From Macrostomum hystrix (Eukaryota > Animalia > Platyhelminthes), in assembly GCA_950097015.1 (NCBI GenBank), contig CATNEN010000029.1, positions 6,510,001-6,574,000 on the forward strand: a stretch of DNA of 64,000 nt, read 5' to 3'. Within the stretch, counting starts at the first letter, position 1. Each line of letters begins with the position of its first letter. The notes under the pieces were generated by a model. The model saw nothing but the letters and a program-made list of their open reading frames with translations, was not told where the DNA came from and did no database searches. This document shows positions 9,101 through 47,454 of this stretch, one piece after another. A program made the position numbers and the translations under genes.

Positions 9101-12100
9101 TACTTAATTAAATCCTAGGCTTCCCTATACCTGCTGGCCGAACTGGGCGCTCTAAATCCATCCCAACTGGCCGGTAGTGGAGCACTTAAAACGGTTCTGC
9201 AGGCAGTTCTGGACACTAGCCTGCCGCCCAGGTGCACAGAGGCATTAGTTGGCGTCCTGGCGCATCTATTAAATAAGCCGGATACTCGGCGCTACCTGAG
9301 GCCGCTGCCCGAATCGCTGCACTGTCTGCTCAGTCCGTTAACTAATCCTACCAGCTGCCGTTCTGGTGACGGACGCCAAGCCGTTCTCTGCCTATTCCGC
9401 ACGTGGCCCGGCCTCCTATCACTGTCGCCGCGTAGCCTAGTAGGCATGCTATTTGTCAATAGCGAAGAGGCTCGCTCTGCGCTTGTTGATTTCTTTTTCG
9501 ACCTGTTCCTTGTGCCTAAGCCGCCATCTGGCGTAACGGAATTTAGCGAAGCCATCAGGTAAATAAATAATACTTGTTTGTTTGAGAATGACTGCTCTCT
9601 GAGACCGGCCTCTGATAGTTTTTTTAGAAAGTGGTTTGGAATTTATAATTCTTGCTAAAGCATTCTAACAGAAACTCTTGACTTCTGTACCAATAATCAA
9701 ACCAAAAATTGTTTCGCAGGTGTCTGTATCCGTCCGACGAATCCTGGGATCTGACTGAAGGCTTCGTATCATCTGAAGGCTGCGATCTATTAGAATATAG
9801 ATGTCCAACTAGGCTAAACCTACTCGAGAATCACCTGGCCTTTCTGCTGCACCTGTTTGTACAGTGCGGCCTAGCGCATGGTCTATCCAGCTTACTGGCT
9901 GACAAAGCCTCCGATCAGCTGGGCATTCGATGCGCCTTGTTGCTAGGCGAGCTGACGCATCGCAGTCGACTCCTGCCCGCCGCCCTGCGCTCTATCGGCT
10001 CCGCTCTCAGCGCCCCGGCTCTGTTGCGAAATCAGCGCGCCCTGCACTGGCTGGCTGCGGTGCAGCGGGCTAGAGAGAAGCCGCCACCGCCTAGGAATGT
10101 ACTATTGGCGGCGCTAGTTGCTCAGGTGCGATCTTTGATGATATGATTGAATGGGGATGAGGGATGGGAAAATCCCCCCACTGACCTTTTTTTTGCTGAA
10201 AAGCAAGCACACGAAACCTAAGAACATAGGCCAACATTTTGTTGCGTTTCTTCTGAAACAATAATCAAGTCACCAGCTCTTCAGACCGTCGAGATATTCA
10301 ATGGTTCTGGCCGAAGTTCAGATTTTTCCCATAAGCGCTAGTGTATTTCATATAAACCCCTATACATGAATTGGTACTGCGCCTCAGTGCGGCCTTGCCA
10401 GGCCTTCAGAATTTATCAGCATGTCACACGAATGTGCCTGCATCATCTCCGTCTTCGGTGGTCGCCTACCTTTATCTAGACGGACTGCTGGACCTTCAAG
10501 GGCTACAACAGGTGGAACTAGGCAACTATGGACACCCTGACGCGAATTTCTCCAATTTCACTGATCAAGCCTAAATATTAGGCGCAGCTCAACCACAGGA
10601 CACCCTCGCCTAGTCTGTGACCAATTAGTCACTACCCAACGCTGTTAGAATTCGGGACGGGGTAAATTTTCAGGGGGTATAAAAGCGGTCGGCAAAATGG
10701 TTTGGTAGTCCTACTTTTAAAGCGGCGTTATGGAGTCGTTTCAACGGCTTTTCTAACGACAAAAAAGTTATTTACTTTTAAGCGCTTTTATCACACTGAC
10801 TAAAGAGTAACCTTTACCTCGTTTCATTTATTATGTTTTTTTACAATACTCCTAAATACACTACCCACCTTATCTCAATTAGCCCAAGCCGGTCAATGCC
10901 TTCGCTACGCCGGCTGCAGCCTCCGCGGCCGCCTCAGCTTCGGCCTGCGCATCGCTGGCCGCCTGTCCAGACGACCCGGACGACTGGGCCTGGCCTGAGA
11001 TGCTTGGTCTAGTACGCTGCTGTCTACAAACTGATGCGCCTACCGATTACGGATCCTCTGTGTCACTGTCAGCATCAGGCGCCGCCTCATTGACCGCCTC
11101 GGCTGATTGGCTGGCCGCTGCGCGTCGCCTGTGCGCTTTCTACAGCCCGCCGTCCAGCTTAGCAGACAGCTCGCCTACCAAACCAGTTGCCTTTCTGACA
11201 ATGCCATTGAATTGGCACCACGCTGCTGATGCCTACCTCACCGGTGTGGAGCTCATGCAACTGCTAGCTAGACTGCCAGACTCCAGCGAGCTGCACAAAT
11301 GCCTCATCAGTCTAATTAGTGACCTGTCCGCCCACGTGCGCAACCGACTAATGCATTCGCCTAGCCTCCTCATTAGCACCTGCGCCAGGTACGCGCCTGG
11401 ATTCTTAGGCGCCCTCACTGCGTCCGAGCGCGGTGAAGAAGCGCTTGAGGCTTGCAACGCTAAGCAGCTGCTGTTAGAGCTCGTTTCAGATCAGGCGCAC
11501 ACGTACTTTCCCAAGCTGGTGAGATTTGCCAATACAACTCTTACTTGTGCACTATTGACTGCTGAAATAGGTTTAACAGAGTATGCGGTCTCAAAGTCTT
11601 ATTGTTATAAAATTAAATTCATATTGTACCTAACATTAATATGGCCCTTAGCTCGATTCTGCGGCAAAGCCAAATTATTATTTCGTAGGCTCTTGTTGTG
11701 TTGCTTACGCCCATGAGGGCAAACCTAAACATTAAAAGCACAGTGAGAGTGTACACTGCCTGACAGTGTGTGCATGTGTGCTCAGGAGTCAGCTAAACTG
11801 GTTAGAACTGCCTCTCACTAGCTGCTTCAAACTGTTTTTAACTGAAATGCGCTAGTACTCAGCCCTCCTGAGAACATTAATAATTATTATCATTACCGAA
11901 TTTGCCTTGCAGGTATTGGCCACCGTAGACTATACTAGAAGCGGCGGGTTTGGCCGTCTGCTACTTGCCAAAGCTTTGAGCTCCGGCGATGAAGAATGCA
12001 GACTCTACGCAACTCGCCTAATGACTGTGCTGCTGCGAGCCGATATGCCATTCTTTGCCAACTGGGGCATTGAACTGCTAGTCAAACAGCTCTATGATAC

Positions 12101-14629
12101 TGACTCTGCGGTGCGCAAGGCCGCAGTAGCCGTACTAGAAGAGGCCTGCGAACTCGAAGTCAACAAAAACATTCTAGTGCGCCTCCGACCAGCGGCACTG
12201 CACCTGGGTGATCAAGGCGCCATGCTAATTGCCAAGCTGTGCGGCTTTAGCCTAGGATTTCGAGTACTGCAAGAATCTAATTGGTTTCAGCAGCACTTCG
12301 ATTTGTGGTGCTCTCGTCTATGCAATGCCTATCCGCTTCAGGTTGAGCACATGCTCACGGAGGCTCTCACTGGCTATGATCTACCGCCGCCTGGTCAGGA
12401 TTTTGTGCGCGCCTCTTCTAGACCAAAATCTGCGCCAAGGTATGCAGCTGTTCTACACATAAAATACTGCCAGTTTTCTCTATCCCATACATATGGGATA
12501 TTTGTCTAATGGGATTATTATGCGATACTTACAGGCGCATTCTGCTACCGACGCACCTGTTCAGTCAGCTGGCCCTGCACAAAGAGGGCTTCGATTTTCT
12601 TCGCGGCCAAGCCTGCGTTCGTCAGGCTGTTGATCTAGTCTATCAGCTGTTAGAGCCTGGCCAGCGACTAGAAACAGAAGCAGAAATTGTGGCCGCCAAA
12701 GCAGCCGTCTGGTCTCTGGGTCACATTGGCAGCACAGCCTGGGGCCTTCCGCTGATAGAGCAAGACCAAGTTGCTCCAGCTCTGGCTATGCTAGCTGAGC
12801 GATGCCCTGTGCTGTCTGTGCGCGGCGCCTGCTTTTGGGCCCTCTGTTTGGTGGCGGCCACTGAGCGTGGCTGCGCCCTCCTAGCCGAATTAGGATGGGA
12901 GGCCCTGCGCAGCAACCGTAGCCAGCTCTATCCTGTGGTGCTATCCCGGCCGGATCATTTGGCACTGTTGAACCCGTCTTGGGCACAGTCAGCGCCTCTC
13001 AATGGCACAGAGTCTGGCACTGGTGATAGTTGGCGCCTATCGCAGGACTCCATCATCATGGGCAATGGAAGTCGGACTAGTTCAGTTGGCAATGCTGAGA
13101 ATAATTTAGTGAGTCGCGAGCTTCTAGACCAACTCTAATTTTATCTTTACTTTAGTGAGTAAAGATTCTTAAAGATCAAATATTTTTATAAACACCCCAA
13201 ACTGACAGGGCCGGCCCCATTCTCTATCGGCAGCGTCCTGCGGTGGGCATCATCGCTGGCACGTGTCGTCTGTTGGTCATCATCAGCAGCAGCAGCAGCA
13301 GAATCTTGATCAAACTCAGGGAGGAACGCCATCGCGTAAAGCTCGCAGCGCAAGCGCCAGTGAATGCGATCACGCATCCGGTTCGTCGGTTCACACCGTT
13401 TTGCTGGCTAGCGACCATCCGGCTGATGCTAATACTTTCAATTCTGGAGCCGCTGCTGCTGCTGCTGCCGCTGCAGCGGCCACTGTTGCAGCTGGAGCAT
13501 CTGCACAACAGCCGTTTCAGCTGCCCAGCTCTGTGTCTACCTGGACAGGCGGCACGGCTAGAGCTCTCCTGTTGCAGCAGCAACGAGCCGCTCTGGGCAT
13601 TGTCGCGGGCTCGCCTTCAATGAGCGCTCTAGACGGAACTGGCGCTTCAGCCGGCTCCACTCTGTCTCTGCCGGGTGGCCTTCACCACTGCGGCTCTGGT
13701 CACCAGTCCGCCGCTGCTTTAACTAAGCGATGCGGTGCTACTGCTGGAGTTTTGTACCAATGTTTGGCCCTGCCTATCGATCCGAATCGCGTCACCCTCT
13801 GCTCCTGCTGCTGCGACAACGAATTGCCTAATTCTAATGCCGGCGTATCCGCCGCAACCGACTTGGCCGGCGGCTCCGGCGATGCTGGCGTGTCGGCGTC
13901 AGCAAATTCTATCGGCACCAGCGGCTACGCCAGTCGGTCCGATTCTAAGCCGCAGCTCAGCGACTCCTACGGCCTAAATGGGCGCAGCGCGGCGTACAGC
14001 GATGGTGGCGGCGGCGGCTCCGGCTTGGATCTGCACACCGACGAATCCTGCATCGCTTGCAGCCTCTTGGCTCACCGTGGTCTACCAACACCGCCAACGC
14101 CTTCAATAAGCGTTACGTCGGCTTCATTGTCGGACGAAGCTTCCATCGCTCGGGTGCGCCGAGAAATAGTGCAGCTAGTCGGCCAGCTCGCCTGTCATGT
14201 CAACCAGTCGCGAAACGAGGCCGCCCTAATTCAGTTAAAGGCTCGACGACCGGTCGCTTTTAGCCAAGATTTGTGTCTTTATTCCGAGGTGGCTCTAGCC
14301 CTCGCAAGGCATCCTTATTCGCGTAGGTCGCGCGCCTTCGTTCAAGATCTATTCGCTGACGCTTCCTTTGACATCGTGAGTTAAATGATTGTTGTGATGG
14401 GGTGTTCAGTATAATATTCATTAATCTTTTGATTATCCCACTCTTTTTGCGTCACTCCCAATGACTTTGGTCTCTATTAGCCCAAACTTAATTACGTCGG
14501 CTCTAAATAACCCTGCAACCTTCATTACTGACCAGCCCTTCATAGCGTTTTTGTTATAAATCAATCCATCCAGCATTTTCACTCAATACTTATTTTTCGT
14601 TGCAGTTGTACTCAATTCAAACGCCTTAG
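3197..14629 (+). CDS. RICTOR: Rapamycin-insensitive companion of TOR (mTORC2 scaffold), multi-exon
   Basis: Exons joined by hand with GT-AG sites and consistent phases: 3197-3224 (tentative first exon), 7206-7250, 7339-7492, 7587-7718, 7807-8002, 9119-9558, 9720-10125, 10883-11518, 11913-12439, 12535-13108, 13209-14375, 14606-14629. Rictor motifs: EVRAAALR, SWDLTEGFVSSEG, CRLYATRLMTVLLRADMPFFANWGIELLVKQL, KAAVWSLGHIGSTAWG, LSVRGACFWAL, the zinc site HTDESCIAC, and DLCLYSEV. Confidence 0.93.
8056..8370 (+). mobile_element. Full-length tRNA-derived CORE-type SINE in a Rictor intron
   Basis: A box TAGCCCAGTGG (8063-8073) and B box GGTTCGATTCC (8107-8117). CORE-like cctttagcaagacacttaactctgcattgcttcagttcacccagctgttaaatggg resembles the MIR core ccttgggcaagtcacttaacctctctgtgcctcagtttcctcatctgtaaaatggg. 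(ATT)n tail. Candidate TSD TATTCAT at 8047-8053 and 8365-8371. Confidence 0.9.
8616..9050. mobile_element. Non-autonomous DNA transposon (MITE) with TIRs CAGTAGAAA.../...TTTCTACTG flanked by TTAA
   Basis: TTAA at 8612-8615 and 9051-9054. Subterminal inverted repeat ccactgggatatttcaaatacccac / gtgggtattggaaatagcccggtgg. No coding capacity. The TSD could also be read as TA. Confidence 0.85.
10185..10600. mobile_element. Partial copy of a second inverted-repeat (MITE/foldback-like) family in a Rictor intron
   Basis: Collinear similarity to 25190-25690, e.g. tcttctgaaacaa.aatcaagtc.ccag, gaccgtcgagatattcaa, ccttgccaggccttca.aatttatcag, actatggacaccctga. Confidence 0.75.
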
Positions 14630-16089: not shown

Positions 16090-16635
16090 ATGAGCGCAGA
16101 GAAAGGCAAAACTGAGAAGGCCAGCACCAATGTGATGCGAGACATTCGCATCGCAAAGCTGTGCTTGAACATCTGCGTTGGCGAGAGCGGTGATCGTCTG
16201 ACTCGCGCCGCCAAGGTGCTGGAACAGCTAACTAGCCAGAGCCCAGTTTACAGCAAGGCCAGACTCACCGTGCGCTCCTTCGCCATCAGGCGCAACGAGC
16301 GCATCGCAGTGCACTGCACAGTCCGCGGCGACAAGGCCAAGGACATCTTGGAAAGAGGCCTGAAGGTCAAGGAATACGAGCTGCCCCGCTCGTGCTTCGC
16401 CGACAATGGAAACTTCGGCTTCGGTTTGAACGAGCACATCGACTTGGGAATCAAGTACGACCCCAGCATCGGCATCTACGGCATGGATTTCTATGTTGTA
16501 CTGCAGCGCACCGGCAACCGAGTCCAGTACAGGCGCCGCAAGCAGAACCGCGCAGGCCCGAAGCAGAACATCTCGCGGGAGGAGGCCATCAAGTGGTTCC
16601 AGACCACCTACGATGGAGTTATTATGAACCGCTAG
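16090..16635 (+). CDS. RPL11: 60S ribosomal protein L11 (uL5), intronless CDS, divergent
   Basis: [34 protein letters not shown] and [23 protein letters not shown] are uL5 signature motifs. 181 aa, full length. Confidence 0.98.
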
Positions 16636-17253
16636 AGCAATTAATGCACTGGAACGATAACTCTTTAAAAAAGAACCGTCTTGCTGATTGCTGGCTCTGA
16701 GTAGCTGATTGCTAGTACAAGTTGTTGGTGATAAATTCGTTTTTTGGCCGACTGCTTTCCTGGAAATTGCCTTTTCGGCGCTTGGCTGTTGTCTTTCTTC
16801 TTTTATTGGCTTTCAATTAGGCCAAAAATATTTTTGTAGATAAGCTATCAAAGCAAGTAATAATTTGTTTAAAAGAGTACTTGATAAAGAAAGGCTGTGG
16901 GCACTGGCACATTAATTGGTGAAAGTGGACCCGCAGCAAGCGGGGTGGTAATTATGCCTAATCCGCTGACTCCTGAGCATACACTCACACAAGTGTGTAA
17001 CATCTGCCCTGACTTTTTATAAGCAGTTACGTACTACTCAAGCCCCCATGCCTTCGTTTAAATAAATTAAATGTGGCCTCGCTGCAGATTCAAGCTTAGA
17101 GACACTAACCTGCCACCCGCGCCTCCAATTTATTAAATAACTATAAAGTTCAGTAGGATAAGTAAAATATTGCACACAATCCAAAATGAAAAAGTATTTC
17201 TTATTTTACATTTTCACACGTTTATTCTAGCACCGCCGCACAAACTGACGACA

Positions 17254-19757
17254 ATGTCTCAGCACGCGTTGCCTGTACTATTCGTTAATCTTGGCGGCGA
17301 GATGCTTTACATTCTGGATCAACGCCTTCACGCCCAGAAGATAGACAATGAGAAGGCGCGCAAAGTGCTGCACGACATTGTTGGCACAATGTTCAATCGG
17401 CGCTTCATGGAGGAATTGTTCCGGCCGCAGGAGCTCTTCACTCGCAATAGTCTGCGCGTACTGTTCGACCGGCTGGCGCACGCCTCCATTATGCGCCTGA
17501 ATGCGGCCAGTATGGATAAGCTCTACGACCTCATGACTATGGCTGTGAAATTCCAGGTCTACATGACTGAGCGGCCGCGGGACCTGCTGATGGTGTGTCT
17601 GAATCACCTGGACTGGGTGAGCAAACAGCTACAGGGCGAGGATAGTCCGGCTAAGCAGGCTCTGGTTGGCACCTACAAGCTGCTGGCTGCATTGGACAAG
17701 GAGTTGAACCACGGCGATTGGCAGACCTTGCGGCACTGTTTAATGAACTTCTTTCAGGTATGTGTTATGTAGGACCTATATTATCATACTTTCCAAGAAT
17801 CAGCTCGTCTCGTGATTCCGGAAATCAACTCCGCTCCCCTCTTTTTTACTATTAGACCCACTCTCCCCAATTCTTTAATTAGGCTCCCTCAAATGTCAAA
17901 GAATCAGTCCGATTCCTCCCGTTTCTAGAAATCAACTCAATGCTATCTATTTCTAAGAAATAACTTAATCCCAGTCAGTTTATGCAGTTGCTTAATATTT
18001 AGCATTTCTAAGAATCAGCTCTATCCTAGCCATTTCTTAGAATCAGCTCTACCCTAGTCATTTCTTAGAATCAGCTGTGTCAGTTATTTCTAAGAAGTAA
18101 CCGAATCGCATCCATTTCTAAGAACCAACTGAATCCAACCTATTCTATTTCTAAGAATCAACTCAATTAGCTATTTAAAAAATAACTTAATCACAGCAAT
18201 TTCTAAGAATCAGCTCTATTCCAACCATTTCTAAGAATTACCTTGATCCTACCCATTTCACAAAATCAACTCAATCATAGCCATTTCTTAGAATGAGCTC
18301 TATCCTAGCCATTTCTTAGAATTAACCTTATCCCAGCCATTTCTAAAATCAAATAAAAACCCCTTTTATCCCCCTTTTTTTAGAATCTAAGCAAGTGCTC
18401 ACCAAAAAGCCTATATTAGATTGAATTTGAAGCTGCCTAACCATTGTGTTTTAATTATTTCGCAATCATTTCATAATCATTTCGCAACTTTACCCGCTGC
18501 TGGCAGGACACGCACACACGAGTGTCCATCTTCCTTAAAGAGGGCACCCAGGACAACTCGGGCCGGTTTCGCCTACCATTTGGCGGCCCGTTGCCAGCCG
18601 GCTTTGCTCAATTGGGCAGCCTGCAGCTGTACACTAGCCGTGGCAAGGCCCTGCAGCCAGCCAGCTTCCCGGCCAAACAGTTCAACGGACAGAGTCGCGA
18701 AGGCTCCGTAGAAGTGCGCGGCGATCGCGTCACTAATCTGGGCTGCAATATGTACGCTGGTGGCCAAGTGGAAACATCCGCGCCTCAGTTGGCCGCCGGC
18801 AGTGCCGCTGATTCGCGCCCACCTCAGAAGCAGCGCAAAGGCGCCCCAGCCCCGCAGCTAGTTGCTGCGCCTTCGGATCTGGACAGCTATCAGGTACGAG
18901 ACTGTACTAAGCCGCTGGCAATGATAATAATAGGTGCAGGTGCACTCTCACTGTACACCAGAGGTTGGCCATAAATAGTGTGTTCTCCCCACGGCTGCAC
19001 CCCAAATTAATTATGGCCTCATCTGATTCTAGAGTCTGATGCGACAGTTCAGATAGCTAATTTACTAGGTATGCCAAAAGCATAGATTTAGACAGCCCAA
19101 TTTTAAATCAGCCGATAGACTTTGAAACCAGTCTCAGGTCTGTAGCTTATGGGACAAAGATTCTTTTGCCGTGGTTGCAAAAATATTCGCGGCAGATAAA
19201 AAGCTTACTTGTCCTCGCGTCATTGCGCTTTGCTATCAAACAAATGGGCAAATGGAGTCAACATGTCGCTGCACAATTTTCCTAAGAGTGACTCTACTGC
19301 CCGACAGATTCTCAAGAAAGACGAATGTGATAAGTGGCTTGTCCAGGAAATGTGAGATCTATGGTCGAAACCTGCCGCATTTTAGGCGGATCCCAACGCG
19401 GCCGCGCAGTTGGACCTCCTGGCACAGCTGATCGGGTCCGGGCAGCGCCGCTCCGGCTCATCCGGTTTCCGTCTGAACCTGTTCCGCAACGATGCCGAAG
19501 AGGAGGAGGCCGAATCAACCGCCGCAGCCAGGGCCGGGCCAGCCGCTGTTGGCGATCATCGAGTTGTTAATTTTGATGCCAGAGGCGCCGGCAAAGGCGG
19601 TCGCGAGCGACTTAGTCACGTGATGCGCGACTTGCGCATGGACGACGAGGAAGAAGATAACGATGACGGGCCTAACGGAAGCGACAGGCGGCGTGCGGGA
19701 CGCGGAGGTGGCGGTCAGCGCAATCTGCTCGACTTAATGGACGAGCAAAATGATTGA
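17254..19757 (+). CDS. OSCP1: Organic solute carrier partner 1 (OSCP1/NOR1), three coding exons
   Basis: Exons 17254-17757, 18507-18893 and 19386-19757, all phase 0. LPVLFVNLGGEMLYILDQRL, RLAHASIMRLNAASMDKLYDLMTMA and RVSIFLK..Q..SGRF match OSCP1. Confidence 0.95.
17900..18350. repeat. Degenerate roughly 30-bp tandem repeat (core ccatttctaagaatcagctc) in OSCP1 intron 1
   Basis: About 12 recurrences of atttct(a/t)agaa(t/c)ca. Confidence 0.8.
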
Positions 19758-38714: not shown

Positions 38715-39645
38715 TCTCTACATCTCCCACTCTCACTACACTTCTATCCCTCCAACTAGCCTCCTCTCCCACTCTTACTACCCTTCTATCCCTCCAACTA
38801 GCCTCCTCTCCCACTCTAACTACCCTTCTATCCCTCCAACTAGCCTCCTCTCCCACTCTAACTACCCTTCTATCCCTCCAACTAGCCTCCTCTCCCACTC
38901 TTAACTACCCTTCTATCCCTCCAACTAGCCTCCTCTCCCACTCTAACTACCCTTCTATCCCTCCAACTAGCCTCCTCTCCCACTCTAACTACCCTTCTAT
39001 CCCTCCAACTAGCCTCCTCTCCCACTCTAACTACCCTTCTATCCCTCCAACTAGCCTCCTCTCCCACTCTAACTACCCTTCTATCCCTCCAACTAGCCTC
39101 CTCTCCCACTCTAACTACCCTTCTATCCCTCCAACTAGCCTCCCCTCCCACTCTAACTACCCTTCTATCCCTCCAACTAGCCTCCTCTCCCACTCTAACT
39201 ACCCTTCTATCCCTCCAACTAGCCTCCTCTCCCACTCTAACTACCCTTCTATCCCTCCAACTAGCCTCCTCTCTCACTATAACTACCCTTCTATCCCTCC
39301 AACTAGCCTCCTCTCCCACTCTAACTACCCTTCTATCCCTCCAACTAGCCTCCTCTCCCACTCTAACTACCCTTCTATCCCTCCAACTAGCCTCCTCTCC
39401 CACTCTAACTACCCTTCTATCCCTCCAACTAGCCTCCTCTCTCACTCTAACTACCCTTCTATCCCTCCAACTAGCCTCCTCTCCCACTCTAACTACCCTT
39501 CTATCCCTCCAACTAGCCTCCTCTCCCACTCTAACTACCCTTCTATCCCTCCAACTAGCCTCCTCTCCCACTCTAACTACCCTTCTATCCCTCCAACTAG
39601 CCTCCTCTCTCACTCTAACTACCCTTCTATCCCTCCAACTAACCT
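38715..39645. repeat. 42-bp pyrimidine-rich minisatellite (CTCTAACTACCCTTCTATCCCTCCAACTAGCCTCCTCTCCCA)n
   Basis: Direct reading, about 22 copies. Confidence 0.97.
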
Positions 39646-40284
39646 CTCTCTCACTCTCACTACCCCTCTCTCTCCCTATCACTACCTTTCTTTCTTACTC
39701 TCACTGCCCTTCGTTAGCCGCATAAATTTAACAAATAAAAGTATTATCGAATCCTTTAAATATTCTATTTCATGCGGACTTTTTTCTCACTAATAATGCA
39801 AAACAATAAATACCAGTGAAGAAAACGTCCATCAAAGAGTCTTGAAAGAGTGCACTAAAATAGTTGGCATAGCAACTAGACCCCGCAAAAGGTCTTACCT
39901 TAATGTGCTTACAGCTTACTGTAGGCCAACCGAAGTTGCAATTATTGTGACACAGAAAGTGTGAAAGCAGATTTCTCAGACTTCCTGGCAGTTGGGTCAG
40001 AGCAGAGCTGCTCTTTAAGAGGCCCAGCATTTATCCCATCCATACTTCCCACTCTCTTCCTACTCTCATCTCTTCCTGCTGTATTCTCTGGGCAGGTCTC
40101 TGTGTGCACCTTCCCAGTTTGAGAAGAGCCGGTGCATTATTGGTTGCTAGCGGGACTGAACGACCGTCTTCAAGCTTTTTTCTTTTTCCCACGAAGATTT
40201 ATGAAGACTTGAGATTTTTCCTGGGCTGCAGAGATTGCAGAGCTTTAGCTGGCAGATTTCTCAGTGAATACCGTAGAGCTCAAT

Positions 40285-40980
40285 ACTGGTGTGTCACTCT
40301 GGTGATACTGGTGTGTCACTCTGGTGATACTGGTGTGTCACTCTGGTGATACTGGTGTGTCACTCTGGTGATACTGGTGTGTCACTCTGGCGATACTGGT
40401 GTGTCACTCTGGTGATACTAGTGTATCACTCTGGTGATACTGGTGTGTCACTCTGGTGATACTGGTGTGTCACTCTGGTGATACTAGTGTGTCACTCTGG
40501 TGATACTAGTGTGTCACTCTGGTGATACTGGTGTGTCACTCTGGCGATACTGGTGCGTCACTCTGGTGATACTGGTGCGTCACTCTGGTGATACTGGTGT
40601 GTCACTCTGGTGATACTAGTGTGTCACTCTGGTGATACTGGTGTGTCACTCTGGCGATACTGGTGCGTCACTCTGGTGATACTGGTGTGTCGCTCTGGCG
40701 ATACTGGTGTGTCACTCTGGTGATACTGGTGTGTCACTCTGGCGATACTGGTGTGTCACTCTGGTGATACTGGTGTTTCATCACTGGCGATACTGGTGTG
40801 TCACTCTGGTGATACTAGTGTATCACTCTGGTGATACTAGTGTGTCACTCTGGTGATACTAGTGTATCACTCTGGTGATACTGGTGTGTCACTCTGGTGA
40901 TACTAGTGTGTCACTCTGGTGATACTAGTGTGTCACTCTGGTGATACTAGTGTGTCACTCTGGTGATACTGGTGTGTCAC
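40285..40980. repeat. 22-bp minisatellite (CTGGTGATACTGGTGTGTCACT)n
   Basis: Direct reading, about 31 copies. Confidence 0.97.
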
Positions 40981-41759: not shown

Positions 41760-42026
41760 GAGAGGGATAGGAAGAAAGTGGAAGGGGGACGAAGAGGGAG
41801 AGAGTTGGGAGAGGGTGAGAGGTAGAGTTGGGAGTGGTTGAGAGTGTGAGAGTGTGAGAGTGTGAGAGGGAGAGAGGGAGAGAGGGAGAGAGTGAGAGGG
41901 AGAGAGGGAGAGAGGGAGAGAATGAGAGGGAGAGAGGGAGAGGGGGAGACAGGGTGAGAGTGAGAGGGAGAGAGGGTGAGAGAGAGAGGGAGAGAGGGAG
42001 AGAGAGAGCGGGAGAGAGGAGAGAGG
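41760..42026. repeat. GA-rich low-complexity tract
   Basis: Direct reading. Confidence 0.9.
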
Positions 42027-42082
42027 ACACTGCCCATTGAATTTCAAAAATCTAATGTTGGAATCGATTCCGATATGTATCG

Positions 42083-42192
42083 AAAAAATTGAAATCAGGA
42101 TTCGAACCAAGGCAACTCCAGACGCGTTTCGCTCTTTTTGGAGCTCATCAGTAGAGTCTAGCCTAGCGCTCTAGCCATTAGGCTATAGGCGC
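42083..42192 (-). ncRNA. Candidate Pol III (type 2 promoter) transcription unit: tRNA-like 5' half, hammerhead ribozyme, B box, T6 terminator
   Basis: Minus strand: GCGCCTA TAGCCTAATGG CTAGAGC G CTAGG CT AGA CTCTA CTGATGA GCTC CAAAAA GAGC GAAAC GC GTC TGGAGTT GCCTT GGTTCGAATCC TGATTTCAA TTTTTT. A box 42185-42175 starts at tRNA position 8, B box 42108-42098, first run of 4 or more T at 42088-42083. Confidence 0.7.
42114..42158 (-). ncRNA. Minimal type I hammerhead ribozyme
   Basis: Complete core CUGAUGA...GAAA...GUC. Stem I ACUCUA/UGGAGU, stem II GCUC/GAGC with loop CAAAAA, stem III AC-GC-GU (palindrome ACGCGU). Predicted cleavage 3' of the C at + coordinate 42121. Confidence 0.9.
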
Positions 42193-42315
42193 TTGTTCAA
42201 ATTCAGCTTTCAATCTCAACATATCGTAATCGATTCGGCAGCGCCCCGCAACTCAATCCATACTCACTCAACTCCGTGGCACTGACTCGGTCGTACGAGA
42301 CGCCGGTGCTGGCCT

Positions 42316-42835
42316 GAGAGAGAGGGAGAGAGGGAGAGAGAGCGGGAGAGAGGAGAGAGGGAGAGAGTGAGAGGGAGAGAGGGAGAGGGAGAGGGGGAGA
42401 GAGGGAGAGAGGGTGAGAGTAAGATGGAGAGAGGGAGAGATGGAGAGAGGGTGAGAGTAAGATGGAGAGAGGGAGAGATGGAGAGAGGGTGAGAGTGAGA
42501 GGGAGAGAGGGAGAGGGAGAGGGGGAGACAGGGAGAGAGGGTGAGAGTAAGATGGAGAGAGGGAGAGATGGAGAGAGGGTGAGAGTGAGAGGGAGAGAGG
42601 AAGAGGGAGAGGGGGAGAGAGGGAGAGAGGGTGAGAGTAAGATGGAGAGAGGGAGAGAGTGTGAGAGAGTGTGAGTGTGAGAGGCAGAGAGACGAAGAGG
42701 GAATGAAAATGAGGTTGAGTGAGTGTGTAGGAGATGCATTGCAAATATATATTAGAAACACAGATAAAAATAAAACTGAGAGAGTAGGGAGAGTAGGGAG
42801 AGTAGGGAGAGTAGGGAGAGTAGGGAGAGTAGGGA
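42316..42835. repeat. GA-rich low-complexity/minisatellite tract ending in (GAGAGTAGG)n
   Basis: Direct reading. Confidence 0.9.
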
Positions 42836-43430
42836 GCCCTTTTTTAGTATTCGTATTTAATGCACAAGTTTAGGGCTGCAATGAAAATTCATTTTCATTT
42901 TTATGGTACATCTGTATCTGGCTCTCTTTCCTCTCAGGGAAACAAGAGTCTGAAATTTTTTAATTGTCTGCCAATCACCTCATGTTAAAATACTTTGATC
43001 GTGCATGTACAACTATGCCCAAAGTGTGTCTGTCCTATCATAGTAGTCTTAAGCCCCTGGGGGCGCTGGTACTCTTGCTTTCCTGATTACGGCACAGTAG
43101 CGAATACTTCTGCGGATCGCCGCACTTGATAAAATTCTACTCACGTTTGTTTCCTCTCTCTGTCAACCCACTAAGAACTTCATCCCTCTCCTGAGCTGCT
43201 AGATTTCTCACTCGAGTTCTTTTTCTAAGAATTTTGAGAAGCCGCAGTTATTCAGTGACAAAGAAACCCCTTTTGGTTCTCAGGCACTTAGAAGTTGTAC
43301 AATTGGTTTAGATATTTTAAGTGCTTCTGTATCTATAAAAGTACTTTGCCTTTTTTACACAAACCCTGCAAGTCGAGATCCTCGATGTACACCTGTTTTG
43401 GATGTTCTTCGTAACTTTACTCGTAGTTGA

Positions 43431-44705
43431 TCCGCAGCCCTCTCACCTGTCTTATCATCGGTCTGCAGCCCCCTCACCTGTCTTATCATCGGTCTGCAGC
43501 CCTCTCACCTGTCTTATCATCGGTCTGCAGCCCTCTCACCTGTCTTATCATCGGTCTGCAGCCCTCTCACCTGTCTTATCATCGGTCTGCAGCCCTCTCA
43601 CCTGTCTTATCATTGGTCTGCAGCCCTCTCACCTGTCTTATCATCGGTCTGCAGCCCTCCCACCTGTCTTATCATCGGTCTGTCACCTTTCTTATCATTG
43701 GTCTGCAGCCCTCTCACCTGTCTTATCATCGGTCTGCAGCCCTTCCACCTGTCTTATCATCGGTCTGTCACCTGTCTTATCATCGGTCTGCAGCCCTCCC
43801 ACCTGTCTTATCATCGCTCTGTCACCTGTCTTATCATCGGTCTGCAGCCCTCCCACCTGTCTTATCATCGGTCTGCAGCCCTCCCACCTGTCTTATCATC
43901 GGTCTGTCACCTGTCTTATCATCGGTCTGCAGCCCTCCCACCTGTCTTATCATCGGTCTGCAGCCCTCTCACCTGTCTTATCATCGGTCTGCAGCCCTCT
44001 CACCTGTCTTATCATCGGTCTGCAGCCCTCTCACCTGTCTTATCATCGGTCTGCAGCCCTCCCACCTGTCTTATCATCGGTCTGTCACCTTTCTTATCAT
44101 TGGTCTGCAGCCCTCTCACCTGTCTTATCATCGGTCTGCAGCCCTTCCACCTGTCTTATCATCGGTCTGTCACCTGTCTTATCATCGGTCTGCAGCCCTC
44201 CCACCTGTCTTATCATCGGTCTGCAGCCCTCCCACCTGTCTTATCATCGGTCTGCAGCCCTCCCACCTGTCTTATCATCGGTCTGTCACCTGTCTTATCA
44301 TCGGTCTGCAGCCCTCCCACCTGTCTTATCATCGGTCTGCAGCCCTCTCACCTGTCTTATCATCGGTCTGCAGCCCTCTCACCTGTCTTATCATCGGTCT
44401 GCAGCCCTCTCACCTGTCTTATCATCGGTCTGCAGCCCTCTCACCTGTCTTATCATCGGTCTGTCACCTGTCTTATCATTGGTCTGCAGCCCTCTCACCT
44501 GTCTTATCATCGGTCTGTCACCTGTCTTATCATTGGTCTGCAGCCCTCTCACCTGTCTTATCATTGGTCTGCAGCCCTCCCACCTGTCTTGTCATCGGTC
44601 TGTCACCTGTCTTACTATCGGTCTGCAGCCCTCTCACCTGTCTTATCATCGGTCTGCAGCCCTTTCACCGGTCTTATCATCGGTCTGCAGCCCTCTCACC
44701 TGTCT
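43431..44705. repeat. 31-bp minisatellite (CACCTGTCTTATCATCGGTCTGCAGCCCTCT)n with 23-bp short variants
   Basis: Direct reading. Confidence 0.97.
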
Positions 44706-44929
44706 ACCCTTCATCCGCAGCATATAATAAAGCAATGAGGGCTCACTTGCGAATGCCATTCTGACTCCAGGAATGCCGACCGCAATTTGATAGTGCAGCC
44801 CCTGCCGATCAGCCTTGGTGTAAAAATATATCGCCGTACGTCCGTTGGGGTTGAAAAAGCTAGCACTAGCTAATTAAATACCAAGATTCAGACCTTATTA
44901 AATTTGAATCGCTGATTTCGATAAGCCAG

Positions 44930-44983
<54 letters not shown>

Positions 44984-46367
44984 GTGGTTCTGCTGATACT
45001 CAATTCGACTAGCCAATCCTGCAAGACTATCGTGTAGCACCTTCAGATGCGGTGAATCTAGTACCAGTTCTTTGATGTCGCCGCCAATCGCGCCTTCAAC
45101 GGAGGCTCCTTTGATGACGTTTCTAGAGTCAGTCTCAGCGGTCCCAATAGCGTTCTGTCCTCTGACGTTGCCGCCTGTCTGACTGTCTGTAGAGATCTAT
45201 TAAACAATATGTTGGAAATAAGGAACAGATCTTTCGCGTCGACTAATAGAAACTCGAAACTGCTCGAAACTCCTCACCGTGCTGTTTCGCGAGTCTCGAA
45301 ATCGACGCCTTCGATCTTCGACTCGACGCTCAGGGCAGAGCTGCGCATCGGACTGGCCGCTTTGCGAAGTGCTGCTGGCGGAGAACAGTGGCCGTTTTAA
45401 TACCGGCTTTTGCCTACTAATAGTAGAATAGGCAGTTAATAGTTTTCAACATTTCTACTTATTCCAGACGTAGAAAATGTAAAATATTTTAAAGTACAAT
45501 TTAACAACGCAGCGCTCACAACCGATCCATCGGCGTAATGACCGCTTCCTCGTCCGCGGAACTCGCGACGTCATCATCTTCAAGCTCCTCGGCCTCCGCT
45601 AGGCGGCTCCAGCTGTAACTCTGCTCGCGGTTCATTGGTGATTCTCTAAGCCGTGTTTCCTTAACTCAAAGACTGGAAAGAGAGTATGTTTAGATGTTCA
45701 ATAAGATGGAGGACGGATAGAGGACGATGGAAGACATTTTCTGTGTCGCTCGGAAGAGATTTTCTGGCTATCTATTTCATGATTTGGCCCAGCAGGGTAA
45801 GCCAGCCGATATGTATTGAAAAAATGACATGTAAGCAGACATGTTCTTTGAAGTCTCAAAGGATTTGCAACCAAAGTAGTCTTAGTAGTGGAGAATTAGA
45901 TAATTGAGTCTATAGAGAGCGAAATGATAATTTTTTTCAAAAGAGAATGAGGCACAAAAGCATAGAGCTTACTTACCTAGCTATTGCTAGCTGCAATGAC
46001 CTGTCTGCTTCTTTCGAGTCTACCAGCTCAGAGGATGTCGGAAGCGGCCGGCAGCCTAATTAAATATGGCATCGAGGCGAGGTTGGTGAGCAGACGGCCA
46101 CCCTGCTAGATGGATGGCCTGACAGAGGCGAGAGAGCAGGAGCGCAGATCCAGCATGTCAGTCGATGGGGCTGATCTGGCTACACAAAAGTCCCAATCCC
46201 AACTGCCTGGCCTAATCCCATTGCGATTTATGACCAGTTTTGGCTAGCCTTTTGCGATTCGCTTTTAGATAAACGATTTATCTTTAATGACACTTGCACT
46301 CGCACTAAAGGAAGAATTCATGCGACCTGCGGATGCTGTGTTTCTAAAAGATTTCACACTCGTATCA

Positions 46368-46885
46368 CCTGTTAGATGAGTGCTACCTGTTAAACAACTG
46401 ATGGGGTCAATGCTACCTGTTAGACAACTGATGGGGTCAATGCTACCTGTTAGACAACTGATGGGGTCAATGCTACCTGTTAGACAACTGATGGGGTCAA
46501 TGCTACCTGTTAGACAACTAATGGGGTCAATGCTACCTGTTTGATGAGTGCTACCTGTTAGACAGCTGATGGAGTCAATGCTACCTGTTAGACAACTGAT
46601 GGGGTCAATGCTACCTGTTAGACAACTGATGGGGTCAATGCTACCTGTTAGACAACTGATGGGGTCAATGCTACCTGTTAGACAACTGATGGGGTCAATG
46701 CTACCTGTTAGATGAGTGCTACCTGTTAGACAACTGATGGGGTCAATGCTACCTGTTAGACAACTGATGGGTTCAATGCTACCTGTTAGACAACTGATGG
46801 GTTCAATGCTACCTGTTAGACAACTGATGGGGTCAATGCTCGTTAGACAACTGATGGGGTCAATGCTCGTTAGACAACTGATGGG
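46368..46885. repeat. 30-bp minisatellite (TGCTACCTGTTAGACAACTGATGGGGTCAA)n
   Basis: Direct reading. Confidence 0.96.
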
Positions 46886-47454
46886 GCCATGCTTCCTTTT
46901 AGACACCTGATGTATTGAGTGGTAACCATTACACACATGATTAAATGATAACACCATATTTCTAGCTGTTAAACAAATGAACCCTGAAAAGATTTCAAAC
47001 AAATCTCAACCTTCTAGAAGCAATTCGAGCTTAATCTATCGAGAGTTTTTCATTCCCAATGATAAAATTCTGCAGTAATATTCTTGCGACATGAGTATGA
47101 TATGTTGATCCTCTAACATCGCATATCAGTACAGAACTTTTCATCCAGAAATTTCCAGTATAGCACTGTAATTAGCCTTGATTGCTATCCGATTAATTGA
47201 GGTCCCTGCCCCGCCTTGCCTTGTGCACCCACTGAACTCACGGAGCACTTTGGCGCAACTTAATTGCCACTTGTGCTAGCTGCCTTCAGATTGGCCTGCC
47301 GATGTCCAACGATGCGTGCCTGACCGAATCCGAGATGAAAATAGAAATAGAAAATCTATATTGACTCTTTATCTGGAAGTGGGTCGGAGAGTGGGACAGG
47401 TAGAGGGAAAGACGGGGGAGAGGGAGACACAGGGGAGAGGGAGAGACAGGGGAG

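Follow-up and report, generated by a model that had tools for sequence, protein, structure and literature searches.

Does the hammerhead motif encoded on the minus strand of this locus of Macrostomum hystrix belong to a gene of its own or to a mobile repeat, and would it be able to cleave by itself or only together with a second hammerhead? We addressed these questions computationally, starting from the window (by which we mean the whole stretch of 64,000 nt that was analyzed) and extending the searches to the 220-Mb genome.

Identification of the hammerhead

Re-reading of the minus strand confirmed, as far as sequence can do so, that the locus encodes an intact type I hammerhead ribozyme of the "extended" animal kind, the parts of which are listed in Table 1. 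The type I core set (Rfam clan CL00010: C3 U4 G5 A6 N7 G8 A9, G12 A13 A14, the A15.1-U16.1 pair, and H17) is complete between 42151 and 42121, and the 59-nt motif comprises distal stem I, a UA bulge, proximal stem I, the core, helix II with loop II, helix III, and the cleavage site. In the 5' strand of stem I the UA bulge is followed by the distal helix, whose two strands pair with a single U-U mismatch, and helix III, as read from the sequence, consists of the A15.1-U16.1 and C15.2-G16.2 pairs enclosing a GC dinucleotide. The parts that would be needed for a loop-loop contact are all in place as well, namely a proximal stem I of 6-7 bp, U1.7 at the internal loop, and an A-rich hexaloop with a terminal A. 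The minimum-energy fold contains stem I (7 + 5 bp) and stem II (4 bp); helix III amounts to 1 bp when folded as a hairpin, where it is destabilizing, and reaches 6 bp in a dimer only. The structural details given in the original prediction (core bases, loop II CAAAAA, U1.7, UA bulge, distal helix, and the ACGCGU palindrome) all proved correct. The span that it assigned to the motif, 42114-42158, does cover the proximal hammerhead, but the full motif runs from 42166 to 42108.

Rfam model HH9 (RF02275) matches positions 42169-42098 with 40.1 bits, corresponding to E values of 1.1e-8 locally and 7.9e-7 over the 220-Mb genome, and on these values the hammerhead match is better than chance. When the whole window was scanned against Rfam at gathering thresholds no match was returned, and the hammerhead surfaces at E-value thresholds only; its score is in fact below the HH9 gathering value of 52 because its helix III is 5 nt shorter than that of the model. 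No second hammerhead is present in the 64 kb, and the window copy thus has no tandem partner.

Table 1. Features of the hammerhead and of the repeat unit in the window (all on the minus strand; positions are those of the window)
Feature	Position	Strand	Basis
Complete type I hammerhead, 59 nt	42108..42166	-	sequence reading, Rfam HH9, stems I and II in minimum-energy fold
Distal stem I, 5' strand CUAGGC	42161..42166	-	
UA bulge in stem I 5' strand	42159..42160	-	
Core strand C3 U4 G5 A6 U7 G8 A9 (CUGAUGA)	42145..42151	-	sequence reading, Rfam
Helix II GCUC/GAGC with loop II CAAAAA (loop 42140-42135)	42131..42144	-	sequence reading
G12 A13 A14, then palindrome ACGCGU (A15.1 to U16.1), helix III; GAAA (G12 to A15.1) at 42130-42127, ACGCGU at 42127-42122, U16.1 at 42122	42122..42130	-	sequence reading, folding energies
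Predicted cleavage site, C17 (42121) / U1.1 (42120)	42120..42121	-	motif geometry
Stem I 3' strand UGGAGUU; U1.7 is base 42114	42114..42120	-	sequence reading
Distal stem I, 3' strand GCCUUG	42108..42113	-	
RNA polymerase III A-box consensus match TAGCCTAATGG	42175..42185	-	sequence reading
RNA polymerase III B-box consensus match GGTTCGAATCC; its first G doubles as the final base of distal stem I	42098..42108	-	sequence reading
Run of six T, possible polymerase III terminator within the repeat unit	42083..42088	-	sequence reading
292-nt non-repetitive core of the repeat unit	42026..42317	-	homology to >60 loci
CT-rich linker, then CT-rich mini/microsatellite, 5' of the element (plus strand GA-rich)	42318..42702	-	
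CT-rich linker/tail, then microsatellite, 3' of the element	41793..42025	-	

The stretch of genome in which the motif lies is gene-dense and intron-poor. Open reading frames of the window include a long open exon of RICTOR (11907-13138, plus strand), RPL11 (16090-16635, plus strand), and a long open exon of Oscp1 (17170-17772, plus strand); RPL11 is intronless, and its product is 94% identical to a Macrostomum lignano protein. Regular long minisatellites surround the element, at 38723-39669, 40283-40980, 43434-44705, and 46367-46912, with periods of 42, 22, 31, and 30 nt, and some of them produce long spurious open reading frames, such as the one at 43402-44727.

A young repeat family

The genome searches indicate that the window hammerhead is a solitary copy of a young mobile repeat of ~336 nt, and not a stand-alone gene. 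The 151 nt around the hammerhead recur on many contigs at 97-100% identity, 87 sites in the genome fall within two mismatches of the 31-mer hammerhead pattern (against none in a reversed control), and the family as a whole numbers about 100-130 copies. A loose core pattern returned 179 genomic matches, compared to 57 in its control, and these mostly belong to the same family, which was also the only one retrieved when the genome was searched with the HH9 model; a metagenome scan for the 31-mer gave 0 matches. Because the genome searches yield no diverged relatives, no helix of the hammerhead is backed by covariation. Among the copies, position 4 of loop II is the sole hammerhead position with common alternative bases: pattern searching identified CAAUAA as the majority loop of the family, CAAAAA, the loop of the window copy, as a minority, and CAACAA as a further variant, and this search ruled out the schistosome loop CAAAUA as that of the family. 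This polymorphism suggests that the position is neutral. At element position 114, which is window base 42204, the window copy has an A in place of G, a substitution private to it.

The repeat unit, with a GC content of 49%, consists of the 292-nt core and of a CT-rich linker of ~44 nt, and the resulting length of ~336 nt agrees with the tandem spacing of 336 nt. Same-strand hammerhead pairs are exactly 336 nt apart at three loci, and 300, 323, 486, and 503 nt apart at others; only about eight loci, however, have two hammerheads, and long arrays are absent. Many solitary copies open with a truncated preceding unit, of which a 3' piece is left; this is followed by the linker and then by a full core, for an overall length of 1.05-1.6 units. 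While the 5' ends of the copies are scattered round the whole unit, the 3' end always lies within the CT-rich tract, and a first look turned up 127-131 candidates when based on the hammerhead or 3' parts, and only 59 when based on the 5' part, an imbalance that indicates 5' truncation, the signature of retrocopies. At many loci, both flanks carry one and the same locus-specific CT-rich satellite, with common strings of 17-33 nt, which argues that copies land in CT/GA-rich satellites. A 12-nt target duplication, TCCCTCTTCGTC, was considered for the window copy (42702-42691 and 41799-41788) and was rejected, as low-complexity flanks share 13-nt strings by chance. As an RNA, the 336-nt unit is predicted to fold on itself as an extended rod, with most of its bases paired (-120.3 kcal/mol; z -4.36; none of 100 shuffles as good), in which the 3' part would pair with the 5' part and the CT linker with a GA-rich stretch, and in which stem I would close the rod across the cut site.

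Two further loci of the family were noted. The first (L037; G000:C38:21523827-21528405) holds five identical 5'-truncated copies, covering element positions 116-292, spaced 1589 and about 685 nt apart in alternation, and here the element is caught up in a higher-order tandem duplication. In the second (L031; G000:C33:43200-43566), both tandem hammerheads have C15.2 replaced by U, and the resulting AUGCGU is still able to self-pair via G-U; loop II differs between the two, being CAAUAA in one and CAAAAA in the other, a pattern suggestive of a mixed template or of an exchange between the units.

A base other than C precedes U1.1 in only three copies genome-wide, one of which is a C17G mutant, while the other two begin exactly at U1.1. 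The chance of two ends falling at one named position is about 0.02, given roughly 70 truncated copies over about 336 positions, and such copies are suggestive, although not proof, of cleavage in vivo. At one locus (L011) that has the predicted cut site as its 5' end, element positions 198-292 are followed by the linker, a full core, and a CT tail. On both sides, this insertion is bordered by unique DNA in the form of a 97-bp direct repeat (L011:1158-1254 and L011:1714-1810; G000:C38, near 31509126), 92.8% identical and with a short CT tract at its start, which in our reading is an unusually long target-site duplication. The whole locus looks like the complete cDNA of an RNA that was cut at the upstream hammerhead and left uncut at the downstream one, and that was then inserted with this long target duplication. 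When 30 loci were screened for long unique target duplications, L011 alone was positive. We also looked for a Penelope-type partner by means of the GIY-YIG domain, and found four matches in the genome, two of which were examined and had no adjacent reverse transcriptase domain. The GIY-YIG matches lie in frames of 270-310 aa, and the two examined are L078:1099-2022 and L079:979-1806, both on the plus strand.

It had been proposed that the motif is recent or under selection. The former holds, as the copies are 96-100% identical; selection on individual copies, however, could not be seen, the hammerhead having 0.0215 differences per site, compared to 0.009-0.030 in other segments, in an alignment of 29 copies collected with a seed outside the hammerhead. 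Conservation is thus no higher in the hammerhead than in the remainder of the repeat, and the motif owes its intactness to the youth of the family. A core mutation is carried by about one copy in ten, and the same core change, G8A (CTGATAAGC), is common to three dispersed copies (G000:C2:4129081, C2:4280020, and C5:511329), so that either a ribozyme-dead source was still able to spread or the same change arose three times. Taken together with the lack of any conservation excess, this shared mutation means that ribozyme activity is not demonstrably needed for the spread of the family.

These data also bear on the possibility that the window copy is an inert relic, dead on arrival and never transcribed, whose hammerhead owes its perfect state to nothing but the recent date of the insertion, and we consider the odds of this to be about even. 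The copy is solitary and embedded in satellites, its hammerhead shares in the lack of conservation excess, and the fraction of copies whose core is already mutated (about 10%) is as it would be under neutral decay. The whole unit is nevertheless intact in the window copy, including the A- and B-box matches discussed below, so that transcription is conceivable. Being a relic would concern this locus rather than the family, and such an explanation is compatible with the one that we favor (see below).

Helix III and the double hammerhead

The original prediction held that the hammerhead was built to work as a dimer because of its short, palindromic helix III. The palindrome alone is weak evidence in this respect, because a palindrome results whenever a 2-bp stem encloses a self-complementary dinucleotide, and the chance of such a dinucleotide is 1 in 4. 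A 2-bp helix III is impossible as a hairpin because the loop that it encloses would be only 2 nt long, and a 1-bp helix III with a CGCG loop is predicted to bring the hammerhead fold from -14.3 to -8.6 kcal/mol, a cost of +5.7 kcal/mol. For a domain-swapped double hammerhead, on the other hand, in which the two ACGCGU segments would form a 6-bp helix III, the predicted energy is -36.7 kcal/mol, versus -28.6 kcal/mol (2 x -14.3) for two monomers devoid of helix III. A "kissing" dimer, in which each hammerhead would keep its own stem I, was also considered and is excluded by topology; the correct double hammerhead needs swapped stem I strands, because the strand 16.1-17-1.1 has to close the junction of the partner core.

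In the transcript of a natural tandem locus (L038), the double hammerhead is predicted at -141.4 kcal/mol, i.e., within 0.5 kcal/mol of the unconstrained optimum (-141.9 kcal/mol), while two separate hammerheads are predicted at -135.8 kcal/mol with helix III open and at -124.4 kcal/mol with a 1-bp helix III, all of these being nearest-neighbour energies, which leave out the tertiary contacts that in newt permit monomeric cleavage (PMC6155905). In this transcript the swap comes at no cost, since the rod is closed by the inner of the two swapped stem I helices. Precedent points in the same direction: in amphibian retrozymes, where helix III is a single pair capped by a palindromic tetraloop, the hammerheads need to be dimers for efficient cleavage (PMC7229834), the dimer-dependent class also counts the ASBVd hammerhead among its members, and newt, axolotl, and Penelope hammerheads with a like helix III cleave as dimers as well (PMC7229834, PMC6765202, PMC6155905). 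On the strength of these models and analogies, we are inclined to think that the hammerhead would depend on a dimer in cis, that is, on two tandem copies on one transcript. The proposal of a dimer hence finds support in silico, from the instability of helix III as a hairpin and from the energies of the tandem transcript, and from known systems; the dimer that fits, however, is a cis tandem, the window copy has no partner with which to form one, and newt hammerheads with intact loops can cleave as monomers too (PMC6155905), so that dependence on a dimer is less than certain.

It could in fact be argued that every copy, including the solitary ones, cleaves alone as a monomeric "extended" hammerhead, with the contact between U1.7 and the last A of loop II holding the core together in spite of a 1-bp helix III. 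The stem I internal loop, U1.7, and the A-rich hexaloop are all there, the consensus of Rfam HH9 has an identical helix II and an identical loop II, and newt satellite 2 hammerheads can cleave singly, given a looped helix I extension and a compatible loop II (PMC6155905). We consider this rather unlikely, because axolotl monomeric repeats with a like helix III cleave weakly, and dimeric constructs much better (PMC7229834), and because such a mode would have to bear the 5.7 kcal/mol penalty of the 1-bp helix III. In the tandem transcript, the double form is predicted to be 5.6-17 kcal/mol better than two separate hammerheads.

A different form of dimerization was also envisaged at the outset, in which separate transcripts would pair through ACGCGU and cleavage would be turned on only when the RNA is concentrated, so as to act as an abundance switch. 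The palindrome does permit intermolecular pairing, a cofolded dimer is predicted to be more stable than two monomers (ddG of -5.8 kcal/mol at minimum energy and -4.8 kcal/mol for the ensemble), and Penelope hammerheads cleave in vitro as intermolecular dimers (PMC6765202). To obtain the correct dimer, however, both stem I helices would have to open and swap partners, a cost that tandem loci avoid by providing the partner in cis, and the predicted Kd between separate molecules, which ranges from about 2 uM (relative to stems I and II only) to about 0.4 mM (ensemble), is far above usual cellular RNA levels. Pairing between separate molecules would thus be weak, and such a switch appears highly unlikely.

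Proposed mechanism

The reading that we favor, with a probability of about 0.6, is that the hammerhead is the ribozyme of a young, non-autonomous retroelement of ~336 nt, that its helix III is too short to fold alone, and that it would cut as a double hammerhead in cis. From the motif, the family and its youth, the tandem and truncated anatomy of the copies, and the energetics described above, we infer a possible course of transcription, cleavage, circularization, and copying. Loci with two units would transcribe both hammerheads into one RNA, in which stem I would form between units, its 3' strand coming from the first and its 5' strand from the second, and would at the same time close the rod formed by the unit in between, and the two ACGCGU segments would pair to give one 6-bp helix III. 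The double hammerhead would then cut both sites and release a 336-nt RNA with 5'-OH and cyclic-phosphate ends, which could become a circle by ligation or serve as a template as it is. A reverse transcriptase acting in trans would start on the CT-rich tract at GA/CT-rich satellites, and reverse transcription would yield 5'-truncated copies that are longer than one unit. The window copy would be one solitary product of such a process, and its single hammerhead should cleave poorly, or else only as a monomer and more slowly.

The putative polymerase III promoter

Two segments of the unit match the A- and B-box consensus of RNA polymerase III (Table 1), and we take them to be a putative promoter. 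The hammerhead and its cut site sit between the two matches, and cleavage would therefore split the promoter. ARAGORN found no tRNA here, and the acceptor and T stems do not pair, which suggests that the tRNA-like frame has decayed. A run of five T (42050-42046) lies within the retrotransposed unit in addition to the run of six T, and the two together would halt polymerase III before the end of a full unit, so that the element is a poor fit to a simple polymerase III template. A stand-alone small RNA gene, in which polymerase III would make a tRNA-like RNA of ~115 nt from the A and B boxes to the run of six T and the hammerhead would split it into two functional small RNAs, is the least probable of the explanations that we weighed, for although both boxes and the terminator do occur in the correct order and spacing, the unit reaches 125 nt upstream and about 100 nt downstream of this cassette in every copy, no cloverleaf can be folded, and the putative cassette shows no extra conservation over the rest of the unit.

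The position of the boxes invites two speculations. A linear, unit-length cDNA would have box B at its 5' side and box A at its 3' side, and only a circle, or more than one round of copying, would rebuild a cassette that can be transcribed, in the order of A box, hammerhead, and B box. It is conceivable, though in our view quite unlikely, that the element is an obligately circle- or tandem-dependent SINE, in which ribozyme, need for a dimer, and promoter act as one interlocked check that only copies longer than one unit would pass. The hammerhead would furthermore leave tRNA-ligase-type ends at the very place of the intron in a tRNA anticodon loop, and the tRNA-like frame might recruit tRNA ligase for circularization.

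Significance and comparison with known systems

For the window locus itself the result is a modest one, namely one solitary copy. The family, however, shows that the "amphibian-type" hammerhead, whose helix III is weak, has an example among flatworms too. In the main survey, invertebrate retrozyme hammerheads have a longer helix III and cleave well as monomers (PMC7229834), and the distribution of dimer-type hammerheads among animals may therefore be wider than has been described. The family is also small, young, and cleanly resolved, to the point that tandem sources, solitary products, truncation points, a cut-site copy, and the 97-bp duplication can be read directly. Macrostomum species are, moreover, laboratory animals, and all this makes the family a tractable system to learn how ribozyme-bearing repeats are cut, circularized, and copied.

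Judged by analogy, the flatworm repeat resembles retrozymes and Sm-alpha-like elements as an element, and its hammerhead would work like the double hammerhead of newt and axolotl. Animal non-LTR retrozymes are small and highly self-paired, carry a type I hammerhead, and give rise to partial tandems when their circular or multimeric RNA is copied (PMC7229834). Sm-alpha and Sj-alpha are tRNA-derived, of the polymerase III type, with a unit of ~335 nt and a need for tandem copies to release units (PMC6765202, PMC2770079), and in the layout of Sm-alpha the promoter comes first and the hammerhead follows (PMC6765202).

Among the systems to which the repeat can be likened, Rfam HH9 (amniote intronic, RF02275) is the best Rfam match, with an identical core, helix II (GCUC/GAGC), and loop II (CAAAAA), and with a U at 1.7. 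In HH9, however, helix III has 3 bp and a loop of 5 nt, and the element is intronic, conserved, and present as a single copy, while the window motif is a repeat. The minimal hammerheads of Penelope-like elements share with ours a very short palindromic helix III, the dimers thought to be needed, and the partial-tandem architecture. They differ in being devoid of loop-loop contact elements and in belonging to coding elements, in whose terminal repeats they are located, whereas the flatworm repeat has a full "extended" hammerhead in a non-coding unit, and the GIY-YIG search brought out no Penelope-type enzyme adjoining it or as its partner.

Sm-alpha and Sj-alpha of Schistosoma, likened here by description and not by sequence homology, resemble the repeat in their flatworm host, in a unit of ~335 nt, in putative polymerase III boxes, and in a type I hammerhead with an A-rich hexaloop. 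Unlike in Sm-alpha, the hammerhead and its cut site lie in our repeat between the match to the A box (42185-42175) and that to the B box (42108-42098), and not after the promoter, and the copies are about 100, compared to >10,000 for Sm-alpha. Helix III of Sm-alpha is also longer than that of the flatworm repeat.

With the metazoan non-LTR retrozymes (Cervera and de la Pena 2020), the repeat has in common that it is short and non-coding and carries a type I hammerhead, that its 336 nt fall within the range of 170-400 nt, that its unit is predicted to be self-paired, that long target duplications occur, and that its partial tandems are consistent with cDNA made from circular or multimeric RNA. 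It stands apart from them in a GC content at the upper edge of their range, in the absence of long arrays, and in insertions that are consistently in CT/GA-rich satellites.

Finally, the newt satellite 2 and axolotl HHR_Amex1 hammerheads, compared here by description, differ from that of the window repeat in their genomic setting, since ours belongs to a flatworm, has ~100 copies that are at most 1.6-mers as opposed to huge arrays, and lies between tRNA-type promoter boxes. As ribozymes, however, they are alike: both are canonical type I hammerheads with loop-loop contact elements in a unit of about 330 nt, both have one stable helix III pair with a palindromic tetraloop, and for both, efficient cleavage as a double hammerhead is to be expected in tandem transcripts (PMC7229834, PMC6155905).
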